This document shows positions 27,001 through 64,000 of a stretch of DNA of 64,000 nt, piece after piece; position 1 is the stretch's first letter, and each line of letters begins with the position of its first letter. The notes beneath the pieces were generated by a model. It had not been told where the DNA came from. It did not search any database and saw only the letters and a program-made list of their open reading frames with translations. The stretch is taken from contig NIVC01000249.1 in assembly GCA_002269645.1 (NCBI GenBank), positions 62,001 to 126,000 on the forward strand. Direction: 5' to 3'. The position numbers and the translations under genes were made by a program. The stretch is from Macrostomum lignano (taxonomy: Eukaryota).

Positions 27001-30000
27001 AACCCAGCTTGCCGTCGCTGGTTTCCATGGCAACGCTGTAGCCGAGCTGAGCGGACAGCCGGCCGGCCCGAATGCGAGAGGCCAGCTGCTCAGGCGCCAA
27101 GAACTTGCGGCTGGCCCGGTCGTAAACTGAGAGGATGACCTGGCGATGGGGATGCGGCGGCCGTTCTGAGCTACTGACGGCTGTTTGCTGCCCCAGTACT
27201 CATCTTCTGACCTACCAGAGATCAGAAGGCAGGACCTGCCTACAAAATATCTTCTGTCCAACAGCTATGACTTATCTCTGTGACCCATCTCCTGACCCAT
27301 CTCCTGACCCATCTCCTGACCCATCCCCTGACCCATCCTCTGACCCATCTCCTGACCCATCTCCTGACCCAGATCTTCCGACCCATCTCCTGATCCATCT
27401 CTTGACCCATCTCCTGACCCATCTCTTGACCCATCTCCTGACTCATCTCCTGATCCATCCTTTTTCGCATTATTGGACCCATCCCCACCTCACCATCAGG
27501 TCATCAGGCTGTGTCTGGGCTGCTTGAATTCCCAGCAGCTGAACGTCGTCCACCTGTCCGCCCAGCTGACTGGCCACCGCCTCCACCAGCCTGGTGTCCA
27601 GGCCAGCATACAGGAACACCGGGCCGCTCTGATTGGCTATGCGGATGGCCACTGCCCCTCTTAGCGCGGCCTCGGTTGCCATGACAACCCGCAGCCGAGC
27701 CTCCTGCCAGGCGCGCAGGCCGGACCTCTCGGTCTCCACGCGGACTCGGCGGAGAGCCGGGCTGCTGCTGGCTACCCGGTTGCCATTGGCAACCAGCAGG
27801 GCGCCGCTCGGGGACACATCGAACAGATCGGCGTGCGAACGTAGCCGGATTCGAACCCCGGGACCAACGCCGATGCCGTCGCCGTCTAGCAGAGACAGGT
27901 CGGCGAGGCGGACGCCGCGTTCCGGCGGTCGGAGGAACACGGCGGTGGCGTTCAGCGGCTGAAGACGAGGCGGGGCGACGTTGGAGCGGATGGCGCGGAC
28001 GATGACCGTGGCGGTGTTGCACAGGATGGAAGCGCCGCTGTCGCACACCTGAGGGGGGGCCAGTTCAGGTCAGAGGGTGGGTTAAAGGATGGGTCAGAGT
28101 ATAGGTCAGGGGATGGGTCAAGGGATGGGTCAAGGGATGGGTCAAGGGATGGGTCAAGGGATGGGTCAAGGGATGGGTCAAGGGATGCGTCAGGAGATGG
28201 GTCAAGGGATGGGTCAAGGAATGGGTCAGGGGATGGGTCAGGGGATGGGTCAGGGGATGGGTCTGATATGGAAACATCTCAGAAGATTGGCTAAGATAAA
28301 CTCTAATGTGTGTTGGTAAAATTGACGAAAGAAGCGCATCAGAGGGATCACGCAAGACCATGCGATAACTGAGAAGTTAAATACGAATAGATACGAATCT
28401 TTACATATTCCTCATTTGCTACTCATAAGTAGACAAAAAGAATTTAAAAACTCACCTGCACCCTGAGCCGTTCGGCCCCTGGCCGAAACTGGGTGTCCTG
28501 ACCGACGCTCAGCCGGCCATCGTTGAGCCGGTAGCGCAGGTTGTCGCCCTCCACTATGGTCCACAGAAATGGAGGCCCGCCAGTGCCGGGCAGATCGCGG
28601 TCCGTCACCCGGATGGCGCTGGGCGGGCTGTCGCTGCCCATACTTTCTGGACCGGCGGGCGGCAGCGAGAGGGTCGAGTCCTCAGAGTCCTCCTGCTGGA
28701 TGGGCATGAGCATGCCAAATTTTGTTCTCTTCGTCCAGTTCATCTTCCTCTCATCTCCTCCAATCTCCTCTCCTCTCCTATTCTCTAATCTCCTTTTCTA
28801 TCTTCTTCTCTCATCCTCTTCTCATCACCTTTCCTCTCATCTCATCTCCTCACCTCTCCTATCCTCTTATCTCCTCTCTTCTCATCTCCTCTCTTCTCTT
28901 CTCCTCTCTCCTCTCCTCTCCTCATCACCTTTACTCTCCTCACCTCTCCTCACCTCTCCTATCCTCTTATCTCCTCTCTTCTCGTCTCCTCTCTTCTCTT
29001 TTCTCCTCTCTTCTCTTTTCTCCTCTTTTCTCTTTTCTCCTCTCTTCTCTTTTCTCCTCTCTTCTCTTTTCTCCTCTCTTCTCTTTTCTCCTCTCTTCTC
29101 TTCTCCTCTCCTCTCTTCTCTCTTCTCGTCTCGTCTCCTCTCCTCTCATCTTATCTCATCTCATTTCCTCATCTCTCTTCTCCTCTCATCTCCTCACCTC
29201 TCCTCTCCTCTCATCTTATCTCATCTCATTTCCTCATCTCTCTTCTCCTCTCATCTCCTCTGCTTTCTTCTCATCTCCTCTCTTCTCTTATCTTTTCTCC
29301 TTTCCTCTCATCACCTCTCATCTACCCTCATCTCCGCTCCTCTCTGCTCATAGTTAGTTAATTCAATTTGAGTCTACAACAGTCATTTCAGTTCACTCCA
29401 ACCAGCCACCTACGGCACTAAACTGCACTAATTGTTCTCACTGATACTCAGCGCATCAAACCGCATTGCATATCTGCATCATAATTTCCTGAGTAAGCTG
29501 TCAATTCTAATTAATTATTGAAACACTTGAGTAGCGTGCCTGCGTAGACATTACGATGTCGTACAAAAAATGCAATTGCATTGCGTAACAAAATTTCCCG
29601 TGTCTGAAGCAATTGCCACGATTACGCAATCTGTTTCGGAAATCCAACCAAAACTGCGAACACAAAAAAATTCAATTAGTGCTCATAGATGAGCTCAGAA
29701 CTCACCAGGTAGGGCTGCTGAGTCGCATTGCCGGATTCGTCCAACTAAATGGGGATAAATAGGGATTGAAAAAATCATTAACAAAGTGGTGCAACTGTGT
29801 TTTAACAATTATTTGTTAGACTTCACAAGATAGTCTGAGATTCCCTAGAGAGGCTGTGTCCAATTAGAGTGCTCTATCGGGACTACGCTTTGAAATACTC
29901 GTAGGAATGAGTCATTGGAACAATTTGAGTCATAAGAGAAAATGAGTCATAAAAATGAGTCATAAGAAATAAATGGGTTATAAGAAATTTAGCAAGTCAT

Positions 30001-33000
30001 AAAACAGAAATCGTCATGAGAAAAAATGAGTCATAGATATTGAGTCAAGATAGAAATGAGTCATACTAAAGAAATAAGTCATGAGAAAAATTTACGTCAT
30101 TAGAAAGAAATGAGTCATTAAAAGGAAATGAGTCATAAAAAGAAAATGGGTGATAAGAAGGATATGAGTCATAAGAAGGAAATGAGTCATGAGAAAAATT
30201 TACGTCATTAGAAAGAAATGAGTCATAAGAAGGAAATGAGTCATGAGAAAGAAATGGGTCATAATAAGGATACATGTATGAGTCTTTAGAAGGAAATGAG
30301 TCATGAGAAGGATATGAGTCATAAGAAGGATGAGTCATAAGAAGGAAATGAGTCATGAGAAAGAAATTGGTCATAAGAAGGATATGATTCATGAGAAGGA
30401 AATGGGTCAATAGAAAGAAATGAGTCATGAGAAGGAAATGAGTCATACAATCTAAATATGAAGCCGAACGCACCGGCAGAACAAAGGTGTACTCCCGCCG
30501 GTCAAACTGGGGCCTGCAATCGTTCTCATCGAGCACCAGGACTCGCACAGCGGTGCTGGCGCTCCTCTGCGGCCGGCCGTGGTCCCTGGCCGACACAGTC
30601 AGGGTCAGGCGGTCGCGAGTCTCCCGGTCCGGCGGCACCCGCACGAACAGCTGGCCGGTGGCTTCGCTGATGTTGAAGAGGCCATCCGGGTCGCCGGACT
30701 CGATCCGGTAGGCCAGCCGGCTGTTCTCGCCGGAGTCCGCGTCGGTGGCGACGACCGCCAGAGACAGGGGAGACCCGGCCTTGGTGTTCTCCTTCACCGT
30801 CACGTTGAAGCCTTCGGCTGGGAACACCGGCGAGTTGTCGTTCTCGTCCAAGACGCGAACGGTGACGACGGCGGTGGACACCAGCGGGGAGGCGCTGAGG
30901 TCGAAGGCGGTCACGGTGAGGTAGTACAGCGACTGCCTCTCGTAGTCTAGGCGCGATTTCAGCGACAGAGTGCCTGAGGCGGTGGGCGGTGGGTGCACAT
31001 GGAGATGGGGACATTGCAGTGGGTCATCTAGAATATGGTCATAGAGGTGCATAAAAATTGCCTTAGGGATTATCCGATGATGACTCATTTTATAATGTTA
31101 AGGTCAGAGAATGAGTCATCAAGCAGATAGTTGGGTCATAGAATGAGTCATCAAGCAGATAATTAGGTCAGAGAATGAGTCATCAGACAGATAGTTGGGT
31201 TATAGAATAAGTCATCAAGCAAATAGTTGGGTCATAGAATGAGTCATCAAGCAGATAGTTGAGCCATAGAATGAGTCATCAAGCAGATAGTTGGGTTATA
31301 GAATGAGTCATCAAGCAGATGGTTAGGTCATAGAATGAGTCATCAAGCAGATAGTTGAGCCATAGAATGAGTCATCAAGCAGATAGTTGGGTTATAGAAT
31401 GAGTCATCAAGCAGATGGTTAGGTCATAGAATGAGTCATCAAGCAGATAGTTGAGCCATTGAATGAGTAATCAAGCAGATAGTTGGGTCATAGAATGAGT
31501 CATCAAGCAGATGGTTAGGTCATAGATTGAGTCATCAAGCAGATAGTTGGGTCATAGAATGAGTCGTCAAGCAGCTAGTTGGGTCATAGAATGAGAACGC
31601 GGTGCAAAGTACAAGTCTGCAATGCTTGAGTCCTAATATTTGAAAACTCTACCGAGTCGGGCAGTCAGTCATCTACTGAAAAGTTCTCGAATCAATCCAA
31701 TTAAGTTCACTTGGAGCTCGGGCAGAGCTTCACAAAGAGAAATTTTCTCGGCCCCATTAAATCCAGATCAATGAGTGGAAAGCCACTTAAGAGATTGGTC
31801 ATTGATAGAGAAAAATCAATGACGAAAAGTGTTCCAAACTGTTTTCAAAGTTTATCTTAGTCAATAAAATTCAAATCACTCACATATGTTTACCAGAAGT
31901 CTAACAGATATCTTACAGGTATCCAATAGCTACCTAACAGATATCTAACAGGAATCCAATAGCTATCTAACAGATATCTAACAGACACCCAATAGCTATC
32001 TAACAGATATCTAACAGGCATCCAATAGCTATCTAACAGATATCTAACAGACACCCAATAGCTATCTAACAGATATCTAACAGACACCCAATAGCTATCT
32101 AACAGATATCTAACAGACACCCAATAGCTATCTAACAGATATCTAACAGACACCCAATAGCTACCTAACAGATATCTAACAGACACCCAATAGCTACCTA
32201 ACAGATATCTAACAGACACCCAATAGCTATCTAACAGCTATCTAACAGGCATCCGATAGCTACCTAACAGATATTTAACAGACACCCTACTCACCATGCA
32301 CTGCGTCCACAGAGAACAAAGCGTCATTGTCCATCAGGCGGTACCTCACAGCGCCATTGAGTCCGGCATCTCTGCTGGTGGCCCTGAGCTGGGCGATTCT
32401 GTAGTTCACCGGCGTGTCCTCGGACAGGCTGAAGTCCAGGCTGGACGGCTCGAACACCGGCGGATTGTCGTTGACGTCCATGACGGTAAGCAGCACGGCG
32501 TGAGTTGAGCTCCTAGGCGGCTGTCCAGAGTCCCTGGCAACCACAGGTATCCGGTGGACCTCGGACAGCTCCCGGTCAAGCCGACTGTGGCCGAGGGTCA
32601 CCAGGCCGGTCTGAGGGTCCACTCGGAATCGGTCGGACAGCGGCCCAGACTCGGCGGGCAGGCTGTACACAATGCGGCGATTCGCACCTGAGATTGCGGC
32701 AGGCGATTTCGAAGCCAGGGTTGAAGTTGGCACAGCGCAGGTTTCGAGGGAAGCCCGCCAAAACTTCTGAGCCGATTTTGGCTTTTTCTTCGGGCGCGCT
32801 GATTTCTCGCCTCGGCTCTCTAATTGGCTCCGGCTGAACTATAGCCAGCGGGATAAGTATTATAGTTGGTGAAGGCTCTAAATCTAAACCTGATTCTCAC
32901 GGGTCACTGCGCCAAGTCCTTAGGAGGCGAAGGAAGAACTGAGTCGCAGTCGCAGCAGATGAAGAAGAAGAAGCTCAAGAAAACTCCAAGCGATTTGCCA

Positions 33001-36000
33001 TCGAAGGGCTTCCTCTGGCAGAAGACGGTTTGCCGTGTGGGGGGGGGGGAGTTCATGGCCCACTGCGCACCTCATGGGGTGACCGAAGCTTTTATGGCTT
33101 TCTTCCCCCAACTCCCAAATGGGCACCACGCGACCACCTGGACAGGCATGGCAGCGGATTTCACGGCAGGTTTTAGAAAGTTTATGAAGGGGCCAATGGG
33201 AATGAAAAAATGAAAATGAAAACGATTGATTATGAGTGAGAGATAGTTGCTAGGGGAATAACGATAGGTAAATTTGGTAAACTATGATCAGTGATGAAAG
33301 GTTAAGTGCAGATGTAGGATGCAAGGAGACTGAAAGAGATGCAGAGAGGCTGGTAGACATGCAGAGAGGCTGATAGAGATGCAGAGAGGCTGGTAGACAT
33401 GCAGAGAGGCTGATAGAGATGCAGAGAGGATGTCAGAGATGCAGCGAGACAGATAAGATTATTGCCCTTTGGTGTACCCTAGACCCGCCCAGCCTCTGCT
33501 TAAATGGATGGTGTGCCTTGATCTGGGCCATCATAAACTCTGCGAGTTAATTACATCCAATATCCGGTGCGACAGACTATCGCCAGTCCCATTCAATTTA
33601 AAACGGAAATTATTGCAATCACAATTTTCTTAATTACAATCCAGTCACAGTTGCTATTGGCCTAGCTAATTCAAGCATTCCTGGAAATATTCATTAGTTT
33701 CCACAATTGGTGCCAAAAATCAACTCAAAATTAAACTAATCGTCTTTTTTGAACCTTGTCTGACCTTGAAAAAATATGAAAATTTGAATTCGCCATACTA
33801 AGCTCCTCCACTGCCAAAGACCACCCACCTCCTAAGCTCCTCACTCTCGAAGTCTACCCCCCCCCCACCAAGCTCCTTTTCTCTCGAAATCCGCCCCCTA
33901 CTAAGCTTCTCCATTCTCGTAATCCGCCCCCTACCAAGCTCCTCCGCTGTCAAAATCCACCCCCAACCAAGCTCTGCGTATTAATTCATGAGCAAACCAA
34001 AAACTCTGATACTGATACTCAAACAGCGCTTAACCCAATGCAAAAATTAATATGCAATTATTTTTTTATTCAATCCGCATCGGCAGCAGCAGAACGAGAA
34101 ACTGATCGATTAAAGAAGTGGCCTAAGGCAGCAAGAAGTTCGCCATCAGCAGCTCCCATAAATACATTCTAATCTGCCGTCTTGTCTCTCTGTATCCCTC
34201 CCAGAGGGCAGAGGCGGTAGGGGGCGACCCACCTCAGCGAAACAGAGCGGGCATATCAAATCAACTTTTTACTAAACATTAATATACGAACTAAACTGCG
34301 CCGATATGAAGCATCACGGATGTGCTTGCGGCCTAATATTGCCTAGAACTAGCTAGATATCCAGTCTATATACATATTGGCATTTTTCGCTGCCTGCGCA
34401 CACTGCGGTCGGTCCCCTTCGCGGGCATCATTATCAAGTTGCCGAAAAATAGCAGCATTGCCGCAAAAACCGGCACAAATTGCCACTTAAGGAGGCCGAC
34501 ACCAAGGGGCAAACCGAAGCGGGGAATGAATGTCTATTATTTATTTGCTCGGAACTGGGCCCCGAACTTTGAAGAATTCCCTCAGCACTGGCGGGACTGG
34601 CGGAAATGAAGATGGATGCGAGGATGCGGAGGCAGAAAAAAAGCACAAACTGGGTTTGAAGCGATGGTAGCTGACAGTCTCTCTAAGTAGCTGCCGAAGT
34701 CGGGGGTCTTCCTGCGCTGCCTTGTGTCGGGCACTTCTGCGGAAATATGCCTATTCCATTAGTCTAAATTAGTGAAAGCAGAGCTGGCTTGGGAAAGGGA
34801 GACAGAAGGTCGGGGACAAGGATTTGAAATGGACTGATGCAGAGAGACTGGGGACTGGGGATATTGGGGTTGAAGATTGGGAGACTGGGAGATGAAGGAC
34901 TAGAGGACTGGGAGATGAAGGACTGGGAGACTGGGGAATGAAGGACTGGGAGACTGGGAGATGAAGGTCTTGGAGACTGGGAGATGAAGGACTAGAAGAC
35001 TGGGAGATGAAGGTCTGGGAGACTGGGAGATGAAGGTCTGGAAGACTGGGAGATGAAGGAATGGGAGACTGGGAGATGAAAGTCTGGGAGACTGGGAGAT
35101 GAAGGTCTAGGAGACTGGGAGATGAAGGACTAGAGGACTGGGAGATGAAGGACTGGGAGACTGGGGAATGAAGGACTGGGAGACTGGGAGATGAAGGTCT
35201 TGGAGACTGGGAGATGAAGGACTAGAAGACTGGGAGATGAAGGTCTGGGAGACTGGGAGATGAAGGTCTGGAAGACTGGGAGATGAAGGAATGGGAGACT
35301 GGGAGATGAAAGTCTGGGAGACTGGGAGATGAAGGTCTAGGAGACTGGGAGATGAAGGTCTTGGAGACTGGAAGATGAAGGTCTGGGAGACTGGGAGATG
35401 AAGGACTGGGAGATTGGGAGATGAAGGACTGGGAGACTGGGAGATGAAAGTCTGGGAGACTGGGAGATGAAGGTCTAGGAGACTGGGAGATGAAGGTCTG
35501 GGAGACTGGGAGATAAGGTCTGGGAGACTGGGAGACCAGCAACCGTACCAAATCCGCTCAGGTGTCAATTTCCAAGAAAACACCAGACAAGCAGAGATCC
35601 TCAGCCAACCGAGCACGCGGGGATCGCAAAGATGGGGCTCCCGCCGAGCCGGGGTTCCACCCCGCCGGGTCGCAGCTCGCGCATGACGTAGGCGGCCATT
35701 TGCAGCGATTGCGCAATCAATAATGCAATCAACTCGGTGCACCATGGGAGCCGCTGCCGTCAGGCCTGGACGGTGCATCCCCGCCACTCTTCAAGCCTTC
35801 AGCATTCCCCATCACGCAGTGGCTAGTGGGGATCAGCAGAGACACAGGGGATAAACTGGGATGGCTTGGAGAGAAAGAAGGCAGATTGACAGACAGGCAA
35901 GCAAAAGGATTTCAGCTGACAGGTGAATCAAGGCAGCGGCATCATCTTGAACATTCGAGGGGATACAAAAGGCTATCAGGCGATCGCTTCTTAGAGAAAT

Positions 36001-57000: not shown

Positions 57001-60000
57001 CTCCCATCAGTGAATCCCACTCTTCCACCAGTGAATCTCATTCTCCCATCAGTGAATCTCATTCTCCCACCAGTGAATCTCACTCTTCCACCAGTGAATC
57101 TCATTCTCCCATCAGTGAATCCCACTCTTCCACCAGTGAATCTCATTCTCCCATCAGTGAATCTCACTCTTCCACCAGTGAATCTCATTCTCCCATCAGT
57201 GAATCTCATTCTCCCACCAGTGAATCTCATTCTCCCATCAGTGAATCTCATTCTCCTATCAGTGAATCTCATTCTCCCATCAGTGAATCTCACTCTCCCA
57301 CTAGTGAATCTCATTCTCCCACCAGTGAATCTCATTCTCCTATCAGTGAATCTCATTCTCCCATCAGTGAATCTCACTCTTCCACCAGTGAATCTCACTC
57401 TTCCACCAGTGAATCTCATTCTTCCACCATTGAATCTCATTCTCCCACCAGTGAATCTCATTCTCCCATCAGTGAATCTCATTCTCCCACCAGTGAATCT
57501 TACTCTTCCACCAGTGAATCTCATTCTCCCATCAGTGAATCTCACTCTTCCACCAGTGAATCTCATTCTCCTATCAGGGAATCTCATAACCACATCAGTG
57601 AATCTTACTCTTCCATCAGTGAATCTCATTCCCCCACCAGTGAATCTCATTCTCCCATCAGTGAATCTCACTCTTCCACCAGTGAATCTCATTCACCCAT
57701 CAGTGAATCTCACTCTTCCACCAGTGAATCTCATTCTTCTATCAGTGAATCTCATAACCACATCAGTGAATCTTACTCTTTATCAGTGAATATCATTCCC
57801 ACATCAGTGTCTCATTACAATTCAATAGACCTCATATTCTCCCAGTTCATCCCATTTCTAGCTCACGAATCCCATACACTTGAGCACTGATTCCACAAGT
57901 GCTCCCCCAAAACAGCTGTCAAATTGAAGACTGAAAGCTCTCAAGATTAGAAAATAAAACTTCTAATCGAGTTGCAGAGGAGTCCTCACGGACCACACTG
58001 GCCCATACTTGCACAGACAGACAAACTCTCGACGGCTTCAATAGCAGTAAAAATTCTGCTGGTCATTTTCAATGAGCCGGGCTTTAATCAGAGCAGCCGC
58101 CAAGCGTGTCATGAGGTTCAGGAGGACACCGCCCGCCCGGCAGTACAGTGCATTTAGATGTGCGGCCGTAAAAGTCCGCTGAACAGGAATAAGAGTGCAT
58201 CAACTTCATACTGCATTATATAGTATTGCTGGCTAATTTGGCATCTGCTAACAATTTGGGCCTTGGCTAAACTCGCCAGCTGCAATTTGCAGGCCCGCGA
58301 CGCTGAGCGAATGCGCATCGCTTCCAATATTTGCTGTTTTGAAGGAATTCCTTTGCGTCCCGGCACTTTTCTTTGGGAAGCTTGTTAGCTTTGCGGAAGA
58401 GGGCTTCTGCTCTCTTGTCTCTCACACTCTATTTCTCCCTCTCTATTTCTCCCTCTCTATCTCTCCCACTCTATCTCTCCCGATAGATCTATCCAACTAT
58501 CTCTCTCTATCTCTCCCTCTCCACTCTTCCACTCTATCTCTCTCACACTATTTCTTCCTCTCTATCTCTCCCACTCTAACTCTCCCACTCTCTCTTCCAC
58601 TATATCTCTCCCACTCTATCTCTCCCACTCTCTCTCCCACTCTATCTCTCCCATTCTCTCTCCCACTCTCTCTCCCACTCTCTCTCCCACTCTATCTCTC
58701 CCACTCTCTCTTCCACTCTATCTCTCCCACTCTATCTCTCCCACTCTCTCTTCCACTCTATCTCTCCCACTCTATCTCTCCCACTCTCTCTCCCACTCTA
58801 TCTCTCCCATTCTCTCTCCCACTCTCTCTCCCACTCTCTCTCCCACTCTATCTCTCCCACTCTCTCTTCCACTCTCTCTTCCACTCTATCTCTCCCACTC
58901 TCTCTCCCACTCTATCTCTCCCATTCTCTCTCCCACTCTATCTCCCACTCTATCTCTCCCACTCTATCTCTCCCACTCTCTCTCCCACTCTATCTCTCCC
59001 ACTCTATCTCTCCCACTCTCTCTCCCACTCTATCTCTCCCATTCTCTCTCCCACTCTCTCTCCCACTCTCTCTCTCCCACTCTATCTCTCCCACTCTCTC
59101 TTCCACTCTATCTCTCCCACTCTATCTCTCCCACTCTATCTCTCCCACTCTCTCTTCCACTCTCTCTTCCACTCTATCTCTCCCACTCTCTCTCCCACTC
59201 TATCTCTCCCATTCTCTCTCCCACTCTATCTCCCACTCTATCTCTCCCACTCTATCTCTCCCACTCTTTCTCCCACTCTATCTCTCCCACTCTATCTCTC
59301 CCACTCTCTCTCCCACTCTATCTCTCCCACTCTCTCTTCCACTCTATCTCTCCCACTCTATCTCTCCCACTCTATCTCTCCCACTCTCTCTTCCACTCTC
59401 TCTTCCACTCTATCTCTCCCACTCTATCTCTCCCACTCTATCTCTCCCACTCTCTCTTCCACTCTATCTCTTCCACTCTATCTCTCCCACTCTATCTCTC
59501 CCACTCTATCTCCCACTCTCTCTCCCACTCTATCTCTCCCACTCTCTCTCCCACTCTCTCTTCCACTCTATCTCTCCCACTCTCTCTCCCACTCTATCTC
59601 TCCCATTCTCTCTCCCACTCTATCTCCCACTCTCTCTCCCACTCTATCTCCCACTCTATCTCTCCCACTCTCTCTCACACTCTCTCTCCCACTCTCTCTC
59701 CCACTCTCTCTCCCACTCTCTCTCCCACTCTCTCTCCCACTCTCTCTCCCACTCTATCTCTCCCACTCTCTCTCCCACTCTATCTCTCCCATTCTCTCTC
59801 CCACTCTCTCTCCCACTCTCTCTCTCCCACTCTCTCTCCCACTCTATCTCTCCCACTCTCTCTCCCACTCTATCTCTCCCACTCTCTCTCCCACTCTATC
59901 TCTCCCATTCTCTCTCCCACTCTATCTCCCACTCTCTCTCCCACTCTATCTCCCATTCTCTCTCCCACTCTATCTCCCACTCTCTCTCCCACTCTATCTC

Positions 60001-63000
60001 TCCCATTCTCTCTCCCACTCTATCTCCCACTCTCTCTCCCACTCTATCTCCCACTCTATCTCTCCCACTCTCTCTCCCACTCTATCTCTCCCATTCTCTC
60101 TCCCACTCTATCTCCCACTCTCTCTCCCACTCTATCTCCCACTCTATCTCTCCCACTCTCTCTCACACTCTCTCTCCCACTCTCTCTCCCACTCTCTCTC
60201 CCACTCTATCTCTCCCTCTATATCTATCCAACTATCTCTCTCTATCTCTCCCTCTTTATCTCTCCCACACTATCTATAGCACTCTATCTCTCCCTGTCTA
60301 TCTATTCCACTCTTTCTCTCCCTCTATATTTCTACCTTTCTATCTCTCCCAATCTATCTCTCCCACTCTCTCTCTCCCACTCTATCTCTCCCATTCTATC
60401 TCTCCCTGTCTATGTCTCCTACTCTATCTCTCCCACTCTATCTCTCCCATTCTATATCTCCCTCTCTATCTCTTCCACTCTTCCTCTCCCTCTATATCTA
60501 TACATCTCTATCTCTTCTAATCTATCTCTCACTCTCTATCTCTCCCTGTCTATATTTTCCACTCCATCTCTCCCTCTCTATCTCTCTTGTCTCTATCGCT
60601 TTCTTCGTACCAACTTTTGCCTCTTTCCACCCTCTCCACCTTCTCTGCATGTGTCACACAATAAGGATATTTAAAGTGATTCTCCATAATTCTCTCTGAT
60701 CCCCAGACAATCTCAACGCTTCCTACTTTGATGTAGCAGCCAAGCTCAAGAAAAAAGGTCTACTATAGCATCTCTTCGCTATTTTTAAGGGACCGCACGT
60801 GAGGCCATGCGGAATAAAAAACACAGAATCCCCACAGACACGCGGCATCATCATACAGCATGGCTATGCCTGGTTGTCCGGCTCGCACTGTGACAGTCTA
60901 ACAGTCCAACCCATGGTCACGCTAGGAAGGCTTCGGCTGTCTCGGCCCCCTCCCGGTCTCGCACTTCCGCCCGGCATTGGGAACAGGGGCTCCGGGGCTA
61001 TTGAAGAGGAAGAAGGGGAGGCCAACAAAGACGGAGCACTTCTAATTCTGGGATATCTTCCTCTCGTCTCGATGCAGCCTCATTTAACAAAGTCCATCAT
61101 GCTTTTTATTTATCAGCTGGGATGTAGGCAGACTCGTGTCAAACACACACTTTAACTTGGGAATCGTGCACGGAATTACAATGTTCACTATCATTGGGAG
61201 GACCAACCATCCCAGATCCGAACATCTTGTGGGTGCTCAGGGGCCAGCAGAATGAAACGGGCCCAGCAGGGGGTGCACGGTGGTCGTGGCCTTTTAATCG
61301 CCGAATCAACTAAACTGTCGGCAACACAAGATAATTGCCCAATTAACTCATCAAGTTCCATTTAACTAAAAGCTTTATTTGCATACAAGCGGAATGGCTA
61401 AGTCAATGAATTCAAGGCTGACAGGGGAAATCGCTGAGATTTCAAGGCTCACATGGAATTTCTGAGATGTCAAGGCTCACAGGGGGAATTTCTGATATGT
61501 CAAGTCTCACGGGGGGAATTTCTGAGATGTCAAGTCTCACATGGAATTTCTGAGATGTCAAGTCTCACGGGGGGGACTTCTGAGTTGTCAAGTCTCATAA
61601 GGGGAATTTCTGAGATGTCAAGGCCAACGGGGGAATCGCTGAGATATCAAGGCTCACGGGGGGATTTCTGAGATGTCAAGGCTGAGGGGGGAATTTCTGA
61701 GATATCAAGGCTCACGGGAAGATTTCTGAGATGTCAAGGCTGACAGGGGGAATTGCTGAGATGTCAAGGCTACCGGGGGGAATCGCTGAGATGTCAAGGC
61801 TGACAGGGGGAATTGCTGAGATGTCAAGGCTACCGGGGGGAATCGCTGAGATGTCAAGGCTGACAGGGGGAATTGCTGAGATGTCAAGGCTACCGGGGGG
61901 AATTGCTGAGATGTCAAGGCTGACAGGGGGAATTGCTGAGATGTCAAGGCTGACAGGGGGAATTGCTGAGATGTCAAGGCTACCGGGGGGAATCGCTGAG
62001 ATGTCAAGGCTGACAGGGGGAATTGCTGAGATGTCAAGGCTACCGGGGGGAATTGCTGAGATGTCAAGGCTGACAGGGGGAATTGCTGAGATGTCAAGGC
62101 TGACAGGGGGAATTGCTGAGATGTCAAGGCTACCGGGGGGAATCGCTGAGATGTCAAGGCTGACAGGGGGAATTGCTGAGATGTCAAGGCTACCGGGGGG
62201 AATCGCTGAGATGTCAAGGCTGACAGGGGGAATTGCTGAGATGTCAAGGCTGACAGGAGGAATTGTTGAGATGTCAAGACTGAGAGGTCAGAAGCAGCAT
62301 GTAGTTTATTTAAAAAATGTATTCCATTCTTTGTTGGCTCCCCAACGGGAGGTGCTGATTGCTAGTAAAGGGCTATTTTTTTATCAACTAAGCTGTAGGC
62401 AGTCAGTCAGGATAATTGCCTAATTAACTCATCAAGATACATTTAACTATATCAAAGCTTTATTTGCATACAAGCGGAATTGGAACTCGACCTTTAGCCA
62501 GAGGCGTCAATAAAAGCGTCAATCTAAAATCGTCAGTCTTCGCGCCAGCAGACCAATTTAAAACACAAAAAAGTTGCGATTAACTCGACTTACATTCCGA
62601 ACTGGCGGCCGGACCTGCGAAATGAAGAAAAAAGGCAATAAACTGCATTTTTATTTGTCTGCATGATGCAGTTGAGTCACAATTAGTAACTGCTTTTACT
62701 GTACTAATATAAAATATAAGGGAAAGTTGGGAAAATCTACGACAGGCGCTAATGGCACGCGATGATGCTGGTCAATTTTGGGCGAGTTGCTACATCCGAA
62801 GACAATCGATTATTTTGTAGTCAAGGAAAGCTAGGATGGAAGCCACTCGGCCCGAATAATCAATCTGACTGCATTAAAACCGCTTTAGAGAAGGGAGAGA
62901 GAGGTGTCGACTTGATAACCGAGACGGGGACGGCAATCTTCAACTGGAGAAATATCACTGGGCACGGCAAAATGTGACTACGTAATGCCCAGACAGTTGG

Positions 63001-64000
63001 AGTGGCCAAAGTGTGCAACTTGTTAACTTGCTAATGAATCAGTAAAATGTACCGGCTGCTGTTAATTCAAGGGCATTCAAAGGCACGGTGCAGTTGCTAA
63101 GAATGTTTCTTAGAAAAGAAATTAGAGAATTAGTAGGATATGTTTCTTAGAAAAGTAATATGTTTCTTGGAGACACAATGTTTCTTAAAAAAGTAATATG
63201 TTTCTTGGAGACGCAATTTTTCTTAGAAAAGGAGACCACAACAATATGTTTCTTAGAAAATTAATGTTTCTTACAAAGAAAAGGAATGTTTCTTAAAAAA
63301 TATGTTTGTTAGAAAATGAATAATTCTTACAAAACAATATGTTTCTTAGAAATACATTATGTTACTTAGAAAAGAAATGTGTTTCTTAGAAAAAAATATG
63401 ATTCTTAGAAAGGAAAAATGTTTCCTAGAAAAGGAATATGATTCTTGGAAAGGAAATATGTTTCTTAGAAAGATGAACGCTTCTTAGATAAGAAATGTGT
63501 TTCTTGGAAAAGGAATATGTTTCTTAGAAAAGAAGTTTCTTAGATAAAGAATATAGTTCTTGGAAAATCTCTCACCAGCGGCGAAGTCCAGCCAGAAGAG
63601 GCCTTCCGGATCTCCGGACTCGATTCTATACGCCAAACTGTTCTCCGAGCTGCCAGCATCGGCCGTCACCATGGCAACCAAACCGTCCACCGGCACCGCC
63701 TCGGAGATTCGAACTCGGCGCCTGTCGGACGGCCGATATGCCGGCCCGGCCTGCGGAGCCACCAGGACGGTTGCCATGGCAACTGCGTTTTTCGCCGGCC
63801 TTCCGGAATCTGAGCAGGAGACGCTGAGCTCAAAAACGCCGACAACAGACGAGCCGGCGCCCCCCAGCCGCAGGCTGATGGCTCCGCTCGTAGCGTCGAT
63901 GCTGAAGACGCCGTCACCGACGCCACTGCTGACGCCGAAGACGCGGCCGACGCTGGTCACGCTGACGATCGAGTAGGTCACGGTGCCGTTCTCGCCGTAG
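20727..64000 (-). CDS. FAT1/FAT3-like: Fat-like giant atypical cadherin (Fat1/2/3 - Drosophila Fat2/kugelei type), 3' portion; 5' end beyond the window
   Basis: 16 exons: >64000-63576, 52481-52360, 52198-51282, 50973-50137, 49728-48333 (frameshift near 48560), 32687-32295, 30973-30474, 28695-28456, 28048-27494, 27139-26735, 26464-26250, 25887-25441, 24981-24733, 24634-24295, 24043-23605, 21508-20727. All junction phases agree. Cadherin motifs LDRE/LDYE, DxND, DxD; Fat-type TARVAFLSPR segment; one LamG; five EGF-like repeats; TM; cytoplasmic GFHWDTSDW matching the Fat1/3 YHWDTSDW hallmark. Confidence 0.92.
21765..22555. repeat. 23-bp minisatellite
   Basis: GAGTGGCGCCAAAATCTAATTTA. Confidence 0.96.
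22786..23595. repeat. 18-bp minisatellite
   Basis: GAGTGAGTGACACAATCG. Confidence 0.96.
24052..24232. repeat. 33-bp minisatellite filling Fat-like intron w14
   Basis: GTGCAGGTTGGGGTGGCGGGTGATTGTCTAGGG. Confidence 0.95.
24295..25887 (-). CDS. Fat-like exons w12-w14 (25887-25441, 24981-24733, 24634-24295): end of LamG, EGF repeats, TM
   Basis: GGGFTGCL; CQNAGAC..CDCRPPFAGRQCE; CLNGGTC; CQHGGRC; EDVDEC (Ca-binding EGF); TM LVAISGASAIILLLALMVFLCVSCCL followed by RRRQRR. Confidence 0.9.
25045..25430. repeat. 20-bp minisatellite (same unit as 26560-26634)
   Basis: GACACTATGACCCTCTCAGT. Confidence 0.96.
26046..26140. repeat. Dispersed repeat copy 2 (shared with 17055-17160)
   Basis: Same blocks as copy 1. 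Confidence 0.75.
26250..27139 (-). CDS. Fat-like exons w10 (27139-26735) and w11 (26464-26250): Fat-specific region and start of laminin G domain
   Basis: TARVAFLSPRF...LRLELRTVQ / ...VSDGQWHLVEL (LamG signature). Confidence 0.85.
26560..26634. repeat. 20-bp minisatellite (same unit as 25045-25430)
   Basis: GACACTATGACCCTCTCAGT, ~4 copies. Confidence 0.9.
27281..27460. repeat. 12-bp minisatellite
   Basis: TGACCCATCTCC. Confidence 0.94.
27494..28695 (-). CDS. Fat-like exons w8 (28695-28456) and w9 (28048-27494): last cadherin repeats and Fat-specific membrane-proximal region
   Basis: IRVTDRDLPGTGGPPFLWTIVEGD...; VRSNVAPPRL...GAVAIRI...DDVQLLGIQ; phase-0 junctions. Confidence 0.85.
28086..28264. 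repeat. 12-bp minisatellite, reverse complement of 27281-27460
   Basis: GGGATGGGTCAR. Confidence 0.94.
28745..29350. repeat. CT-rich low-complexity tract
   Basis: TCTCC/TCTTC units. Confidence 0.93.
29905..30447. repeat. Degenerate ~18-bp A-rich minisatellite with ATGAGTCAT core
   Basis: ATGAGTCATAAGAAGGAA. Confidence 0.88.
30474..30973 (-). CDS. Fat-like exon w7, cadherin repeats
   Basis: LDYERQSLY...VLDENDNSPVF...ATDADSGENS...VLDENDCRPQF. Confidence 0.92.
31105..31595. repeat. 32-bp minisatellite with ATGAGTCAT core
   Basis: GAATGAGTCATCAAGCAGATAGTTGGGTCATA. Confidence 0.94.
31893..32285. repeat. 33-bp minisatellite
   Basis: TATCTAACAGACACCCAATAGCTATCTAACAGA. Confidence 0.95.
32295..32687 (-). 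CDS. Fat-like exon w6, cadherin repeats
   Basis: FRVDPQTGLV...LDRE...ARDSGQPP...VMDVNDNPPVF. Confidence 0.92.
33335..33450. repeat. 20-bp tandem repeat
   Basis: GAGATGCAGAGAGGCTGRTA. Confidence 0.85.
34845..35535. repeat. 23-bp minisatellite with 230-bp higher-order duplication
   Basis: GACTGGGAGATGAAGGTCTGGGA; block starting 34881 recurs at 35111. Confidence 0.95.
36415..38042. repeat. 16-bp minisatellite (1.6 kb)
   Basis: GATCCCASATCCWAGA. Confidence 0.97.
40195..40550. repeat. 16-bp minisatellite
   Basis: GAAATTTAGGTCCTAT. Confidence 0.92.
40855..41303. repeat. 18-bp minisatellite with 162-bp higher-order duplication
   Basis: GATAGCAAGCATCCCCCA. Confidence 0.94.
41948..42292. repeat. 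~19-bp minisatellite
   Basis: GCTACCYTTGAAGGGAGRM. Confidence 0.9.
43075..43590. repeat. Degenerate ~34-bp minisatellite
   Basis: GATGGGATCTTTGGGAGATTTCGAATATTACATTT. Confidence 0.88.
44720..45383. repeat. 29-bp minisatellite
   Basis: TCTTAACGCTGGATGCTGAGGTGCCGAAG. Confidence 0.96.
46128..46420. repeat. Degenerate 21-bp minisatellite
   Basis: CCAAAATGGTTGTCAAGGGTG. Confidence 0.8.
47055..48150. repeat. Adjacent 20-bp (47055-47638) and 29-bp (47639-48150) minisatellites
   Basis: TGTGTCAGATGGTGTCAACT; GTCAGATAGTTCAGATGGGGTCAGGTGAG. Confidence 0.95.
48333..49728 (-). CDS. Fat-like exon w5, cadherin repeats; 1-nt frameshift at the T7 run 48559-48565
   Basis: RRRLDRES...VLDVNDQP...LNGSLDREAE; a second frame continues IDVLDENDCSPEF...VRAVDRDA to a GTGAGT donor at 48332. 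Confidence 0.85.
49845..50115. repeat. 22-bp minisatellite, Fat-like intron w4
   Basis: GTCAGCTGGGTCAGGTGAGAGR. Confidence 0.94.
50137..50973 (-). CDS. Fat-like exon w4, cadherin repeats
   Basis: LDSSTGELTLRSALDRERE...VANINDNLPHF...ARDAD. Confidence 0.88.
51014..51255. promoter_or_regulatory. Intronic cluster of RFX X-box-like palindromes within a ~46-bp degenerate repeat
   Basis: GTTGTTAAACAAC 51014, GTTGCCAAGTGAC 51057, GTTGCTAAGCAAC 51103 and 51243, ATTGCTAAGTGAC 51150. Confidence 0.45.
51282..52481 (-). CDS. Fat-like exons w2 (52481-52360) and w3 (52198-51282), cadherin repeats
   Basis: GALRLAAKLSYE...; LRLRRRLDFETRRHH...VVNSNDWPPRF...LRARDPD. Confidence 0.88.
52483..52897. repeat. (GGAAT)n pentamer satellite abutting the exon w2 acceptor
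   Basis: GGAAT with GGATT/GGACT variants. Confidence 0.97.
53427..53440. promoter_or_regulatory. Consensus RFX X-box in Fat-like intron w1
   Basis: GTTGCTATGGAGAC. Confidence 0.45.
53690..54290. repeat. CT-rich degenerate repeat
   Basis: ATTCTCCCCATCTCTCTC units. Confidence 0.88.
55395..56355. repeat. 28-bp G-rich minisatellite containing TTAGGG
   Basis: GTGATTTAGGGAGGGTGCTGTGAAGGGG. Confidence 0.96.
56925..57800. repeat. 21-bp minisatellite
   Basis: ACCAGTGAATCTCATTCTCCC. Confidence 0.97.
58400..60600. repeat. 2.2-kb CT-rich 10-12-bp satellite
   Basis: TCTMTCTCCCAC. Confidence 0.97.
61330..61396. repeat. ~70-bp direct repeat, copy 1 (copy 2 at 62411-62480)
   Basis: ATAATTGCCYAATTAACTCATCAAG...AAGCTTTATTTGCATACAAGCGGAAT. 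Confidence 0.8.
61412..62285. repeat. 30-bp minisatellite
   Basis: CTGAGATGTCAAGGCTGACAGGGGGAATTG. Confidence 0.96.
62411..62480. repeat. ~70-bp direct repeat, copy 2
   Basis: Near-identical to 61330-61396. Confidence 0.8.
63105..63572. repeat. Degenerate ~20-bp A/T-rich minisatellite with TTCTTAGAA core
   Basis: TATGTTTCTTAGAAAAGGAA. Confidence 0.88.
63576..64000 (-). CDS. Fat-like exon w1 (cadherin repeats)
   Basis: YGENGTVTYSI...FSIDATSGAISL...SDSGRP...LAYRIESGDPEGLFWLD; GTGAGA donor at 63575. Confidence 0.9.

Follow-up and report, generated by a model that had tools for sequence, protein, structure and literature searches.

The host gene and its palindromes

The window analysed here, a stretch of 64,000 nucleotides from the flatworm Macrostomum lignano, contains the C-terminal part of a Fat-like cadherin gene, which extends beyond the window edge at 64000 and has its 5' end outside the window.

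23600..63999, minus strand: host gene, coding for cadherin repeats, EGF domains, a single membrane-spanning segment and a tail, with a weak LamG signal

The combination of cadherin repeats and LamG/EGF modules with a single transmembrane segment and a tail is that of the Fat-like cadherins, among which the predicted protein can be placed. Pfam Cadherin matches were recovered in at least six exons; four open frames bearing the palindromes described below have such matches and are followed by EGF matches (3.9e-7 and 6.3e-6) and a single-pass tail, the only hydrophobic segment being AIILLLALMVFLCV, and the LamG match is weak (E = 0.22). Among PDB structures, the protein matches CELSR1, protocadherins and Fat4 best, and M. 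lignano relatives of the protein are named 'Cadherin-related tumor suppressor' in UniRef. The gene matches an annotated M. lignano protein model (P0028, A0A1I8JEC0 in UniRef) with 99% identity. The exon set is approximate, and the top windows of a scan for rare-codon clusters probably represent intron edges of this set. Exons, which are GC3-rich (0.65-0.77), make up about 19% of the gene span, and the introns are almost wholly filled with unrelated minisatellites.

The sequence-only reading had described eight near-perfect X-box palindromes, of the type bound by RFX transcription factors, in these exons. All eight strings are present where it placed them, in minus-strand open frames of cadherin exons, and its translations (VAMET, VVMAT, VANGN, VSMAT, VAMVT, LLGD, VAMVT and VAMAT) are correct. 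Six of them are strong, one is a good variant (27779), and one (51578) is doubtful and could possibly be a chance occurrence. The sites, numbered s1 to s8, and one intronic match are as follows:

63770..63783, minus strand: s8, GTTGCCATGGCAAC, a perfect 14-nt palindrome read as GTT GCC ATG GCA AC (VAMAT), on the G strand of a cadherin repeat
63665..63678, minus strand: s7, sense GTTGCCATGGTGAC, plus strand GTCACCATGGCAAC, VAMVT, in a B strand directly ahead of the D-x-G...N calcium motif, with a start-to-start distance to s8 of exactly 105 nt
51578..51590, minus strand: s6, weak, sense GTTGCTAGGAGAC, string GTCTCCTAGCAAC, 1-nt spacer, in another reading frame (LLGD)
51531..51544, minus strand: s5, sense GTTGCTATGGTAAC, VAMVT, at an F-strand position, including GTA (3% of Val codons)
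49036..49049, minus strand: s4, sense GTTTCCATGGCAAC, VSMAT, the exact reverse complement of s1
27779..27793, minus strand: s3, GTTGCCAATGGCAAC, VANGN, in which 3 nt separate two perfect half-sites, within the annotated model A0A1I8JEC0 (...GALLVANGNR)
27675..27688, minus strand: s2, sense GTTGTCATGGCAAC, VVMAT, exactly 105 nt from s3 when measured from start to start
27021..27034, minus strand: s1, sense GTTGCCATGGAAAC, VAMET, past the cadherin repeats in a region without a Pfam domain
53427..53440, no strand assigned: GTCTCCATAGCAAC, a weak fit to GTHNYY-AT-RRNAAC, 3 mismatches from the ideal palindrome, with no ORF around it

The last of these is intronic and did not figure in the earlier reading. 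The strong sites are internal to coding exons, 108-606 nt from exon ends, and are not promoter-proximal; no promoters are evident near these exons, which apparently belong to one Fat-like gene as internal, constitutively included exons. Being at least 100 nt from exon ends, the sites are not splice signals. As had been claimed, they occupy non-equivalent positions, namely G, B, F and E-like strands of different domains and the post-cadherin region, and hence were not inherited by domain duplication. Their flanks have nothing in common beyond the 14-16 nt motif; on the strength of these unlike flanks and the different structural positions, we reject a duplicated domain or mobile cassette.

Excess over chance expectation

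We defined as strong those sites with at most 2 mismatches from GTTGCCATGGCAAC, namely those at 27021, 27675, 49036, 51531, 63665 and 63770. Dinucleotide shuffles of the window yielded 0.24 such sites on average, and none of 100 reached six; shuffling the codon order of the CDS yielded 0.026. Comparison with codon-shuffled CDS, which the earlier reading had proposed as a check, was run within the gene, with synonymous codons shuffled and the protein fixed. The excess stood, both at ≤1 mismatch (4 observed against 0.185 expected) and at ≤2 mismatches (6 against 1.31), and none of 2000 shuffles matched either observed count. With all three null models exceeded, chance or composition is ruled out as the origin of these exonic motifs. 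No further site with ≤2 mismatches exists in the window, in agreement with the earlier statement that its other genes lack a full site, and the 32 kb of introns contain no copies except the weak match at 53427. Thus, all six strong sites are exonic, even though exons occupy only about a fifth of the gene span (p about 5e-5).

Palindromes in general show no excess in the CDS (5 against 4.9 expected), which rules out palindrome-rich exons as such, and isolated half-sites are near expectation. The excess is therefore specific to the dimeric X-box.

Codon and peptide constraint

The palindromes are held in place by unusual codons. The earlier reading had noted the use of GTT and GCA against the codon bias of the gene, and these account for 19% of Val and 10% of Ala codons of the CDS, respectively. 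The Val of all seven in-frame sites is coded by GTT, as against 33 of 208 Val codons elsewhere (p = 5e-6), and where Ala follows the Met of a motif its codon is GCA in 3/3 cases, as against 27/301 elsewhere (p = 9e-4). A preference for the GTT-GCC codon pair is ruled out, because V-A dipeptides use GTT in 5/5 cases inside motifs and in only 2/25 outside (p = 1.5e-4). At the peptide level, V.M.T occurs six times against 0.076 expected, an 80-fold excess over composition, and 6 of the gene's 20 Met residues (30%) are found only within motifs. Within the gene, then, synonymous positions are constrained beyond the requirements of the protein; the synonymous shuffle and the uniform use of GTT and GCA bear out that the constraint acts on nucleotides rather than on the peptide. 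The coding sequence thus probably also carries a second, nucleotide-level signal.

Match to RFX specificity

The classic palindromic Rfx site is GTTGCCATGGCAAC itself (PMC3414849), and the RFX4 SELEX consensus is CGTTGCCATGGCAACG (PMC5449588), so that the motif is indeed a textbook RFX palindrome. The consensus then given for it, GTNRCC-N0-3-RGYAAC, describes four of the eight sites and fails for the other four; a related form from the literature is RTNRCC-N1-3-RGYAAC (PMC2375033). The nematode DAF-19 consensus, GTHNYY-AT-RRNAAC (10.1101/2020.08.21.260547), fits all six strong sites; in the window, where 0.31 would be expected, it matches 7 loci (12 strand matches). The seven departures from the ideal palindrome all belong to classes that are degenerate in the DAF-19/RFX consensus (p about 5e-4), and four of the seven are at its least constrained pair, positions 4 and 11 (p = 0.01). 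By sequence, the sites qualify as candidate RFX X-boxes: inverted half-sites fitting published consensus patterns.

Outside the gene, three copies of GTGGCCCAGCAAC that were absent from the earlier reading also fit GTNRCC-N0-3-RGYAAC; those at 8305 and 8347 are units of a 42-nt minisatellite, and that at 8109 is located just ahead of this array.

Constraint on codons and peptides indicates that the nucleotides matter, and not which factor reads them, so the same palindrome could serve a non-RFX protein, for instance a lineage-specific factor. We know of no other factor family with this palindrome specificity. Furthermore, the half-sites, the AT spacer and the tolerated variants match RFX exactly (PMC3414849, PMC5449588), and we regard such a reader as distinctly improbable.

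Distribution among paralogues

At two sites, s2 and s3, the peptides are retained in some paralogues only. In P0030, which is 44% identical, LVMATE is kept at the s2 position and LLVSNGN occupies that of s3 (VSNGN for VANGN), these being the two peptides of A0A1I8J7E7. In P0038 and P0042, at 34% identity, SVAMAT aligns with the LVANGN of s3, SVAMATT being the peptide of A0A1I8F9K6/A0A1I8FBM3. NGN is the translation of AATGGCAAC and MAT that of ATGGCAAC; VANGN of s3 and VAMAT of the paralogues would thereby be one half-site read one base out of frame. These peptides, from which conservation of the DNA is judged, are as expected if both half-sites were kept with spacers of 2 and 3 nt, and RFX sites tolerate spacer variation of N1-3 (PMC2375033). 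Being common to paralogues only 34-44% identical, the two positions must be old.

The locus of the paralogous Fat-like gene L005 (Mlig029076g3) contains no X-box and its introns are equally filled with minisatellites. None is seen in P0032, which has the same fold and, alone among the M. lignano paralogues recovered, has DNA on record. Together with the window's other genes, L005 contradicts the earlier suggestion of a general gene-body or exon mark in a satellite-swamped genome; from these sequences a genome-wide exon mark appears unlikely, and the feature looks specific to the gene or to a subgroup of paralogues. Searches for homologous proteins returned no close relative and no orthologues from other species. 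P0029 and the other matches whose sources were looked up proved to be cadherin-like or Ig-like proteins of bacterial or metagenomic origin, and P0031 (A0A1I8F478) was set aside, its s3 region being out of frame through what we judged to be homopolymer indels of an older assembly. Cadherin contigs of the TARA metagenomes were also rejected as an outgroup: they contain weak consensus matches only, explained by cadherin peptides, and local synonymous conservation between two of them (L001 and L004) is unremarkable.

These contigs do bear on a protein-level explanation, according to which V-x-M-x-T suits cadherin beta strands and the codons reflect local context or luck. Their unrelated cadherin genes encode VTMVT at the B-strand position that s7 occupies here and, where the canonical x-x-G-T motif lies, VAIGT; the DNA of either peptide matches a loose X-box consensus. 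The paralogues keep a hydrophobic-x-hydrophobic-x-T pattern at the s2 position. Since beta-strand peptides of this kind give weak matches in unrelated cadherin genes, the peptide bias could partly originate in the protein. As a full account, however, a protein-level preference is very improbable: the synonymous shuffle with the protein fixed still leaves 4 sites against 0.185 and 6 against 1.31, GTT codes all seven motif Val residues as against two of the 25 other V-A dipeptides, and the 80-fold surplus of V.M.T is spread over structurally non-equivalent positions and is missing from P0032 despite its common fold. Moreover, NGN and MAT, chemically unlike, stand at one aligned position and would have their DNA in common.

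The age of the shared positions is equally relevant to a non-adaptive mutational origin, in which gene conversion, template switching or transposon footprints placed a short cassette in the gene repeatedly, where it has so far escaped decay. In favour of this, the core is identical between sites, s4 reverse-complements s1 exactly, and two site pairs have the same 105-nt spacing. Against such copying, nothing beyond the 14-16 nt motif is common to the sites, palindromes in general are not in excess in the CDS, the sites replace residues within domain strands with no insertions, two positions are old, being common to paralogues only 34-44% identical, and 32 kb of introns have received no copy apart from one weak match. 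We accord this explanation the smallest probability of all, a very low one.

Pairing in the transcript

An RNA-level role is the other alternative that exonic location brings up. Copies of a self-complementary 14-mer would pair in the sense transcript, the likeness to RFX sites being incidental. Within an exon, pairing would give 16-bp stems with about 90 nt enclosed. Exons that lie 10-20 kb of intron apart, or separate mRNA molecules, might also pair, which could help in splicing the huge repetitive introns or promote multimerisation or localisation of the mRNA. The exonic location of all six strong sites (p about 5e-5, taken over the gene span) means that mature mRNA retains them. In minimum-free-energy folds, s8 is paired with s7 (z = -3.4) and s3 with s2 (z = -2.3), and predicted sense duplexes between any two of s1-s5, s7 and s8 reach -14 to -25 kcal/mol, stronger than their antisense counterparts because five of the seven substitutions are G.U-compatible on the sense strand. 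The two non-wobble substitutions, one in s1 and one in s4, complement each other exactly.

The folds are, however, not independent evidence, since two copies of any palindrome pair by construction. The strand asymmetry comes down to 4-5 transitions, which are also the coding-favoured A-to-V or synonymous changes, and is not significant (roughly p = 0.03-0.1); nor is the complementary transversion pair of s1 and s4, together with the five wobble-compatible transitions, significant as covariation. Pairing gives no reason for the exact RFX palindrome among 16,384 possible 14-nt palindromes, or for mismatches that track RFX degeneracy. Hairpins of single sites are weak (0 to -6.5 kcal/mol) and no Rfam family matches. 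Confinement to exons is the pattern expected of a mature-RNA element, and the minisatellite nature of the introns offers a DNA-level reason for it too. On balance, we consider an RNA-level function unlikely.

A proposed intragenic role for RFX

The explanation that we favour, and whose chance of being right we put at about even, is that the exons of this gene carry a cluster of candidate high-affinity X-boxes, kept by selection at the nucleotide level and read by dimeric RFX. Its basis is what the sequences show: an excess of the motif, its place in exons, constraint on codons, mismatches that follow RFX degeneracy, and peptides retained at two sites in some paralogues. The sites would be the inverted-repeat target of dimeric RFX winged-helix factors, each accommodated by the protein in the one frame that gives harmless beta-strand residues (GTT-GCC-ATG-GCA-AC as V-A-M-A-T), at the cost of rare codons and otherwise rare Met residues. 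An RFX dimer might bind the intragenic sites in RFX-expressing cells, which by analogy with other animals would be ciliated types. The bound sites may then act as gene-specific intragenic cis-regulatory elements, either in enhancer-like activation or as a DNA-bound roadblock modulating elongation and splicing across the very long repetitive introns. Occupancy by RFX, the cell type involved and the effect on transcription are the inferred parts of this account. An rfx3-like flatworm gene is listed in a tapeworm study (PMC6225667), and Fat/Dachsous are discussed in a study on planarian ciliary-rootlet polarity (10.1101/324822).

Relationship to known regulatory systems

Functional X-boxes known so far are promoter-proximal and outside coding exons (PMC2375033), and our literature search turned up neither a description of X-box clusters in exons nor one of RFX motifs in Macrostomum. 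The sites described here resemble the promoter X-boxes of RFX/DAF-19 targets (ciliary genes of C. elegans, Drosophila and vertebrates) in having the palindrome GTTGCCATGGCAAC with its allowed variants, and in the arrangement of the two half-sites, which are inverted and 2 nt apart (3 nt in one site here). The promoter elements are usually single and within about 0.2-3 kb upstream of the ATG; in contrast, 6-8 copies here lie deep in coding exons over 37 kb, where they dictate amino acids, and the host is a Fat-like cadherin rather than a recognised ciliome gene.

Three further systems invite comparison. Exonic enhancers or 'duons' likewise have transcription-factor motifs overlapping codons, with codon choice biased towards the motif. 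Reported duons are mostly single low-information sites inferred from footprints, whereas here a homotypic cluster of a 14-bp high-information palindrome occupies one gene, imposing whole pentapeptides and supplying 30% of its Met residues. CTCF sites lie in the variable exons of clustered protocadherins, where they serve transcriptional control; the present case would be similar in placing sites of a DNA-binding protein, here a putative one, in coding exons of the cadherin superfamily. In the protocadherins, each alternative first exon has its one CTCF site, linked to the choice of promoter, whereas here a different factor would be involved and the exons are apparently constitutive internal ones, with no evident promoters. 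Finally, long-range pre-mRNA pairing elements (docking/selector and intron-bridging types) also consist of mutually complementary segments, comparable to the predicted 14-16-bp duplexes. Most known elements of this type lie in introns, and their complementary sequences are arbitrary; here one self-complementary sequence, exonic and matching a transcription-factor consensus, is used throughout.

If RFX or another reader does use these sites, they would present an unusually clean case of dual coding, with a 14-bp palindrome imposed six to seven times on one protein and determining whole pentapeptides, the use of rare codons and almost one third of the methionines. It would imply that coding sequence can maintain strong transcription-factor sites, that exons can shelter regulatory DNA when introns are unstable satellite arrays, and that cis-regulatory needs can shape protein sequence. 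In a flatworm, it may also connect the RFX (ciliogenic) programme with a cadherin of planar-polarity type, and M. lignano is a transgenic-competent species.

Companion motifs and a possible composite module

Motifs resembling the Pol III B-box, or tRNA T-loop, were observed near several of the X-boxes:

63705..63715, minus strand: B-box-like AGTTCGAATCT, between s8 (55 nt) and s7 (27 nt)
51684..51694, minus strand: possible companion motif, second exact GGTTCGAATCC, 94 nt from s6, in another frame (D-G-S-N-P)
51493..51503, minus strand: B-box-like AGTTCGAGTCC, 28 nt from s5
27847..27857, minus strand: possible companion motif, exact B-box/T-loop GGTTCGAATCC, 54 nt from s3, coding G-V-R-I-R

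Two exact copies of GGTTCGAATCC and three near-copies were found, the looser pattern having been defined after seeing the data. No tRNA relic or known RNA family was recognised: ARAGORN predicts no tRNA gene at GGTTCGAATCC, Rfam gives no match, and inspection of the flanks by eye revealed no T-stem. Of the A-box, B-box and cloverleaf that make up a tRNA gene, the 11-mer GGTTCGAATCC is all that is present. Extra-TFIIIC (ETC) sites are B-boxes without a tRNA gene. The motifs here, putative TFIIIC sites at most, resemble them in lacking both a tRNA gene and a T-arm stem, and differ in residing in coding exons next to X-boxes.

These motifs raise an extended and rather unlikely version of the RFX explanation, in which the exons preserve a composite DNA module older than the split of the Fat-like paralogues, serving as an intragenic mark for RFX and possibly TFIIIC. 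The module would consist of paired X-boxes exactly 105 bp, or about ten helical turns, apart, with GGTTCGAATCC-like motifs 27-94 nt away, and might mark some giant genes with satellite-filled introns, either for architecture or for the control of elongation. Under the composite-module reading, VANGN and VAMAT, taken as one half-site in different frames, would show the protein to be subordinate to the module, which, if real, would constitute a class of exon-embedded regulatory code not described before.

Host gene and exon context

The minus strand carries the C-terminal part of a Fat-like cadherin gene (~23600-63999), which extends past the window end and was analysed for the part within the window. 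Its motif-holding open frames are GC3-rich (0.65-0.77), and Pfam Cadherin matches fall in the following exons.

Cadherin matches in the host gene
48312-49745, minus, long exon, above threshold
51197-52132, minus, long exon, above threshold
30066-31088, minus, long exon, above threshold
32290-32838, minus, long exon, above threshold
50025-51008, minus, exon, weaker match
63484-63981, minus, exon, weaker match

Downstream of the cadherin repeats lie EGF domains, a weak LamG signal, a single hydrophobic segment and a tail; with one exon as query, the top solved-structure matches were CELSR1, protocadherins and Fat4. Exon 27473-28069, searched exhaustively with HMMER, matched UniRef A0A1I8JEC0 of Macrostomum lignano at 99% identity over a stretch that terminates in ...GALLVANGNR, so that at least one X-box-like site (s3, see below) lies inside an annotated protein model. 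Exon limits are approximate, being taken from open frames trimmed by eye, with one splice junction confirmed by A0A1I8JEC0. Many of the introns (in 23000-63567) each contain a different, unrelated minisatellite; periods range from 5 to 60 nt, lengths reach 2.2 kb, and the arrays often begin a few bases from the exon edge (e.g. 25048-25430, 27281-27459, 28068-28263, 49836-50114). The same intron architecture is seen at L005, the genomic locus of the M. lignano paralogue P0032.

Two overlapping open frames are candidates for the cytoplasmic tail. One adjoins the transmembrane segment and contains a 33-nt tandem repeat (24053-24236; 5.6 copies, 96% matches, unit TPRQSPATPTC); the other (23600-24079) is similar to the tail conserved at the C-terminus of the paralogues (...EALALVTLASGETRIVPQRELD...).

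An excess of X-box-type palindromes

All eight X-box-like strings reported in the sequence-only reading are present exactly where it had placed them, and their translations are all correct.

X-box-like sites in the host-gene exons
s1, 27021, strong site, VAMET, after the last Pfam-detectable repeat
s2, 27675, strong site, VVMAT, after the last Pfam-detectable repeat
s3, 27779, 3-nt-spacer variant, VANGN, after the last Pfam-detectable repeat
s4, 49036, strong site, VSMAT, E-like strand
s5, 51531, strong site, VAMVT, F strand
s6, 51578, weak site, LLGD
s7, 63665, strong site, VAMVT, B strand
s8, 63770, strong site, VAMAT, G strand

The six strong sites lie within two mismatches of GTTGCCATGGCAAC, against 0.24 expected from dinucleotide shuffles of the window (0/100 reach six) and 0.026 from codon-order shuffles of the approximate 7.7-8.0 kb CDS. 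All six fit the nematode consensus GTHNYY-AT-RRNAAC (quoted in 10.1101/2020.08.21.260547), for which 12 strand matches (7 loci) were observed versus 0.31 expected. The consensus proposed earlier, GTNRCC-N0-3-RGYAAC, yields seven loci versus 0.55 expected; it fits four of the eight sites, but the other four fall outside these loci. The remaining three loci, overlooked in that reading, are copies of GTGGCCCAGCAAC at 8109, 8305 and 8347, the latter two being units of a 42-nt minisatellite and the first lying just before the array; they are probably a low-information match to GTNRCC-N-RGYAAC, amplified by tandem duplication. The 42-nt and 28-nt minisatellites of 8109-8683 have units containing TGGCCCAGCAAC.

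Site s3 is credible, with both half-sites perfect around a 3-nt spacer, whereas s6 is weak, lies in a different reading frame and may be a chance match; an additional weak match at 53427 is intronic. All statistics derive from one gene, and the 105-nt spacing described next, the wobble asymmetry and the B-box-like motifs are post hoc observations.

The two X-box pairs that each share an exon, 63783/63678 and 27793/27688, have an identical start-to-start spacing of 105 nt (35 codons, ~ten helical turns); in the paralogue P0030 the peptides matching the second pair are 34 residues apart, and the spacing is thus not strictly conserved. An exactly palindromic 16-mer, TCGATGTCGACATCGA, is found at 49060-49075, 10 nt away from s4, and encodes D-V-D-I-D; the palindrome scan of the CDS also returned GCGGCCGCGGCCGC (49101-49114).

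Constraint on nucleotides rather than on the peptide

The windowed part of the gene contains 20 Met codons, six of them within V-x-M-x-T versus 0.076 expected from composition. The proposal that the constraint is not on the protein is supported when synonymous codons of the host-gene CDS are permuted with the protein fixed: four sites with at most one mismatch are seen versus 0.185 expected, and six with at most two versus 1.31, neither count being reached in 2000 permutations. The suspected preference for GTT and GCA is also evident, as GTT opens all seven in-frame motifs versus 33/208 Val codons elsewhere (p = 5e-6; 19% of Val codons), and GCA encodes Ala after the motif Met in three of three cases (p = 9e-4; 10% of Ala codons). 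GTA, with 3% of Val codons, is used at one site. Fairly clearly, then, the constraint on the motif acts on nucleotides and not on the peptide.

A GTT-GCC codon-pair habit was ruled out, GTT occurring in only 2 of 25 V-A dipeptides outside the motifs. Palindromes as a class are not in excess in the CDS (5 versus 4.9 expected), and isolated half-sites are near expectation. The motifs do occupy non-equivalent positions, on different strands of different domains, and comparison of the site flanks found nothing common outside the motif; given these unlike positions and unshared flanks, neither domain duplication nor a mobile cassette explains the sites. One reading frame is used, the other two requiring C-H-G-N or L-P-W-Q, whereas a beta strand accommodates V-A-M-A-T without harm; this bias in frame does not help to choose between the models.

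Fit to RFX recognition and the possibility of an RNA element

The sites were gathered by plain Hamming distance and not by RFX degeneracy. Each of the seven deviations from the ideal palindrome occurs at a position and in a base class that is free in the DAF-19 consensus (about (1/3)^7 = 5e-4), with positions 4 and 11, the least constrained pair, taking four of them (p = 0.01). Judged from the sequences, this pattern is the one that RFX recognition predicts; the human RFX4 SELEX consensus is CGTTGCCATGGCAACG (PMC5449588). The M. lignano sites agree with the X-box in sequence but differ in position, since known X-boxes are promoter-proximal and these lie in coding exons; the most fitting term for them is X-box-type sites in a new setting, not canonical X-box promoter elements. 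Transcription factors are known to have sites within exons, and enhancers can also be exonic; CTCF sites, too, occur in protocadherin variable exons. Our literature search turned up no earlier description of X-box clusters inside coding exons.

All six strong sites lie in exons, which make up only ~19% of the gene's span (p about 5e-5), as would be expected if the motif acted in mature RNA. However, unrelated minisatellites account for nearly all of the intron sequence, which largely restricts stable single-copy DNA to exons and gives the bias a DNA-level reason as well. Predicted folds pair s8 with s7 and s3 with s2 (stems of ~16 bp; z = -3.4 and -2.3), and computed sense-RNA duplexes between any two sites reach -14 to -25 kcal/mol, stronger than antisense. 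Sites s1 (27021-27034) and s4 (49036-49049), separated by 22 kb of the gene, are perfect reverse complements (GTTTCCATGGCAAC, GTTGCCATGGAAAC) and would be able to pair over all 14 bp in the transcript (computed, -22.8 kcal/mol). Yet two copies of a palindrome pair by construction, the strand asymmetry amounts to four or five transitions that coding favours too (A-to-V or synonymous), RNA pairing offers no reason for an exact RFX palindrome, and Rfam gave no match; we regard action in RNA as improbable.

Paralogues and other cadherin genes

Homologous-protein searches found no orthologue from species other than M. lignano.

M. lignano paralogues at the s3 and s2 positions
P0030 (A0A1I8J7E7), 44% identity to exon; s3, LLVSNGN; s2, RLVMATE
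P0038/P0042, 34% identity to exon; s3, SVAMAT, V-A aligned with V-A of LVANGN; s2, RVTLLTEAM
P0032 (PAA47892.1, Mlig029076g3), 33% identity to exon; neither motif at s3 or s2

The P0030 blocks at s3 and s2 are among the best conserved of the alignment. NGN and MAT are translations of AATGGCAAC and ATGGCAAC, which differ not in the half-site but in spacer length (3 and 2 nt), and X-box spacers of N1-3 are tolerated (PMC2375033). Because these peptides are chemically unlike and yet would be encoded by the same half-site, the peptide comparison suggests that the s3 site predates the paralogue split and that DNA rather than peptide was kept. In P0031 (UniRef A0A1I8F478), an older M. lignano model, the s3 region (window 27700-27830) is read out of frame (…RAVPCWLQWQPGSS…), implying GTTGCAATGGCAAC and other 1-nt homopolymer differences, either from a homeologous copy or from indel errors of the older assembly.

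The gene at L005 has no X-box within three mismatches despite its equally minisatellite-filled introns, and X-boxes are likewise absent from the window's other genes. This argues against the generic exon or gene-body mark envisaged earlier, and for a feature of the host gene or its paralogue subgroup.

Cadherin genes are also carried by TARA Oceans metagenome scaffolds of marine animals (37-40% identical, 40% GC); those of L001 and L004 look, by sequence, like orthologues in related species. The weak consensus matches of the TARA genes, VAIGT and VTMVT, are explicable by ordinary cadherin peptides, and only one lies within two mismatches of the palindrome; VTMVT occupies the same B-strand position as s7. 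As a caution, cadherin sequence somewhat favours the loose X-box consensus.

Weak X-box-consensus matches in cadherin exons of the TARA scaffolds
L001, 1450-1463
L001, 9030-9043
L004, 6824-6837

Proposed function

Given the excess, codon-level constraint, RFX-like degeneracy, gene specificity and partial peptide conservation among paralogues, the best-supported reading of the sequence is a homotypic cluster of candidate RFX sites maintained in coding exons. An RFX dimer would bind these sites, which would serve as gene-specific intragenic regulatory elements, acting either like enhancers or as a bound roadblock that affects splicing or elongation through introns 10-20 kb long. Since ciliogenic programmes are under RFX control, analogy alone makes a connection with ciliated cells plausible. 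Fat/Dachsous are discussed in a planarian ciliary-rootlet polarity study (10.1101/324822).

A possible B-box-like companion motif

The cadherin exons contain two exact copies of GGTTCGAATCC, the canonical B-box of Pol III (tRNA T-loop), versus 0.03 expected, together with near-copies.

B-box and B-box-like motifs in the window
27847-27857, minus
51684-51694, minus
63705-63715, minus
51493-51503, minus
26379-26389, plus
50640-50652

The pattern RGTTCGANTCY, defined after the data were seen, has six matches in the window versus 0.54 expected. No tRNA gene accompanying these motifs was found, and L005 has no B-box-like motif. The motifs occur in at least two reading frames (G-V-R-I-R, D-G-S-N-P) and are possibly putative TFIIIC-type sites; of the five copies in exons, four are 27-94 nt away from an X-box (p about 0.004).
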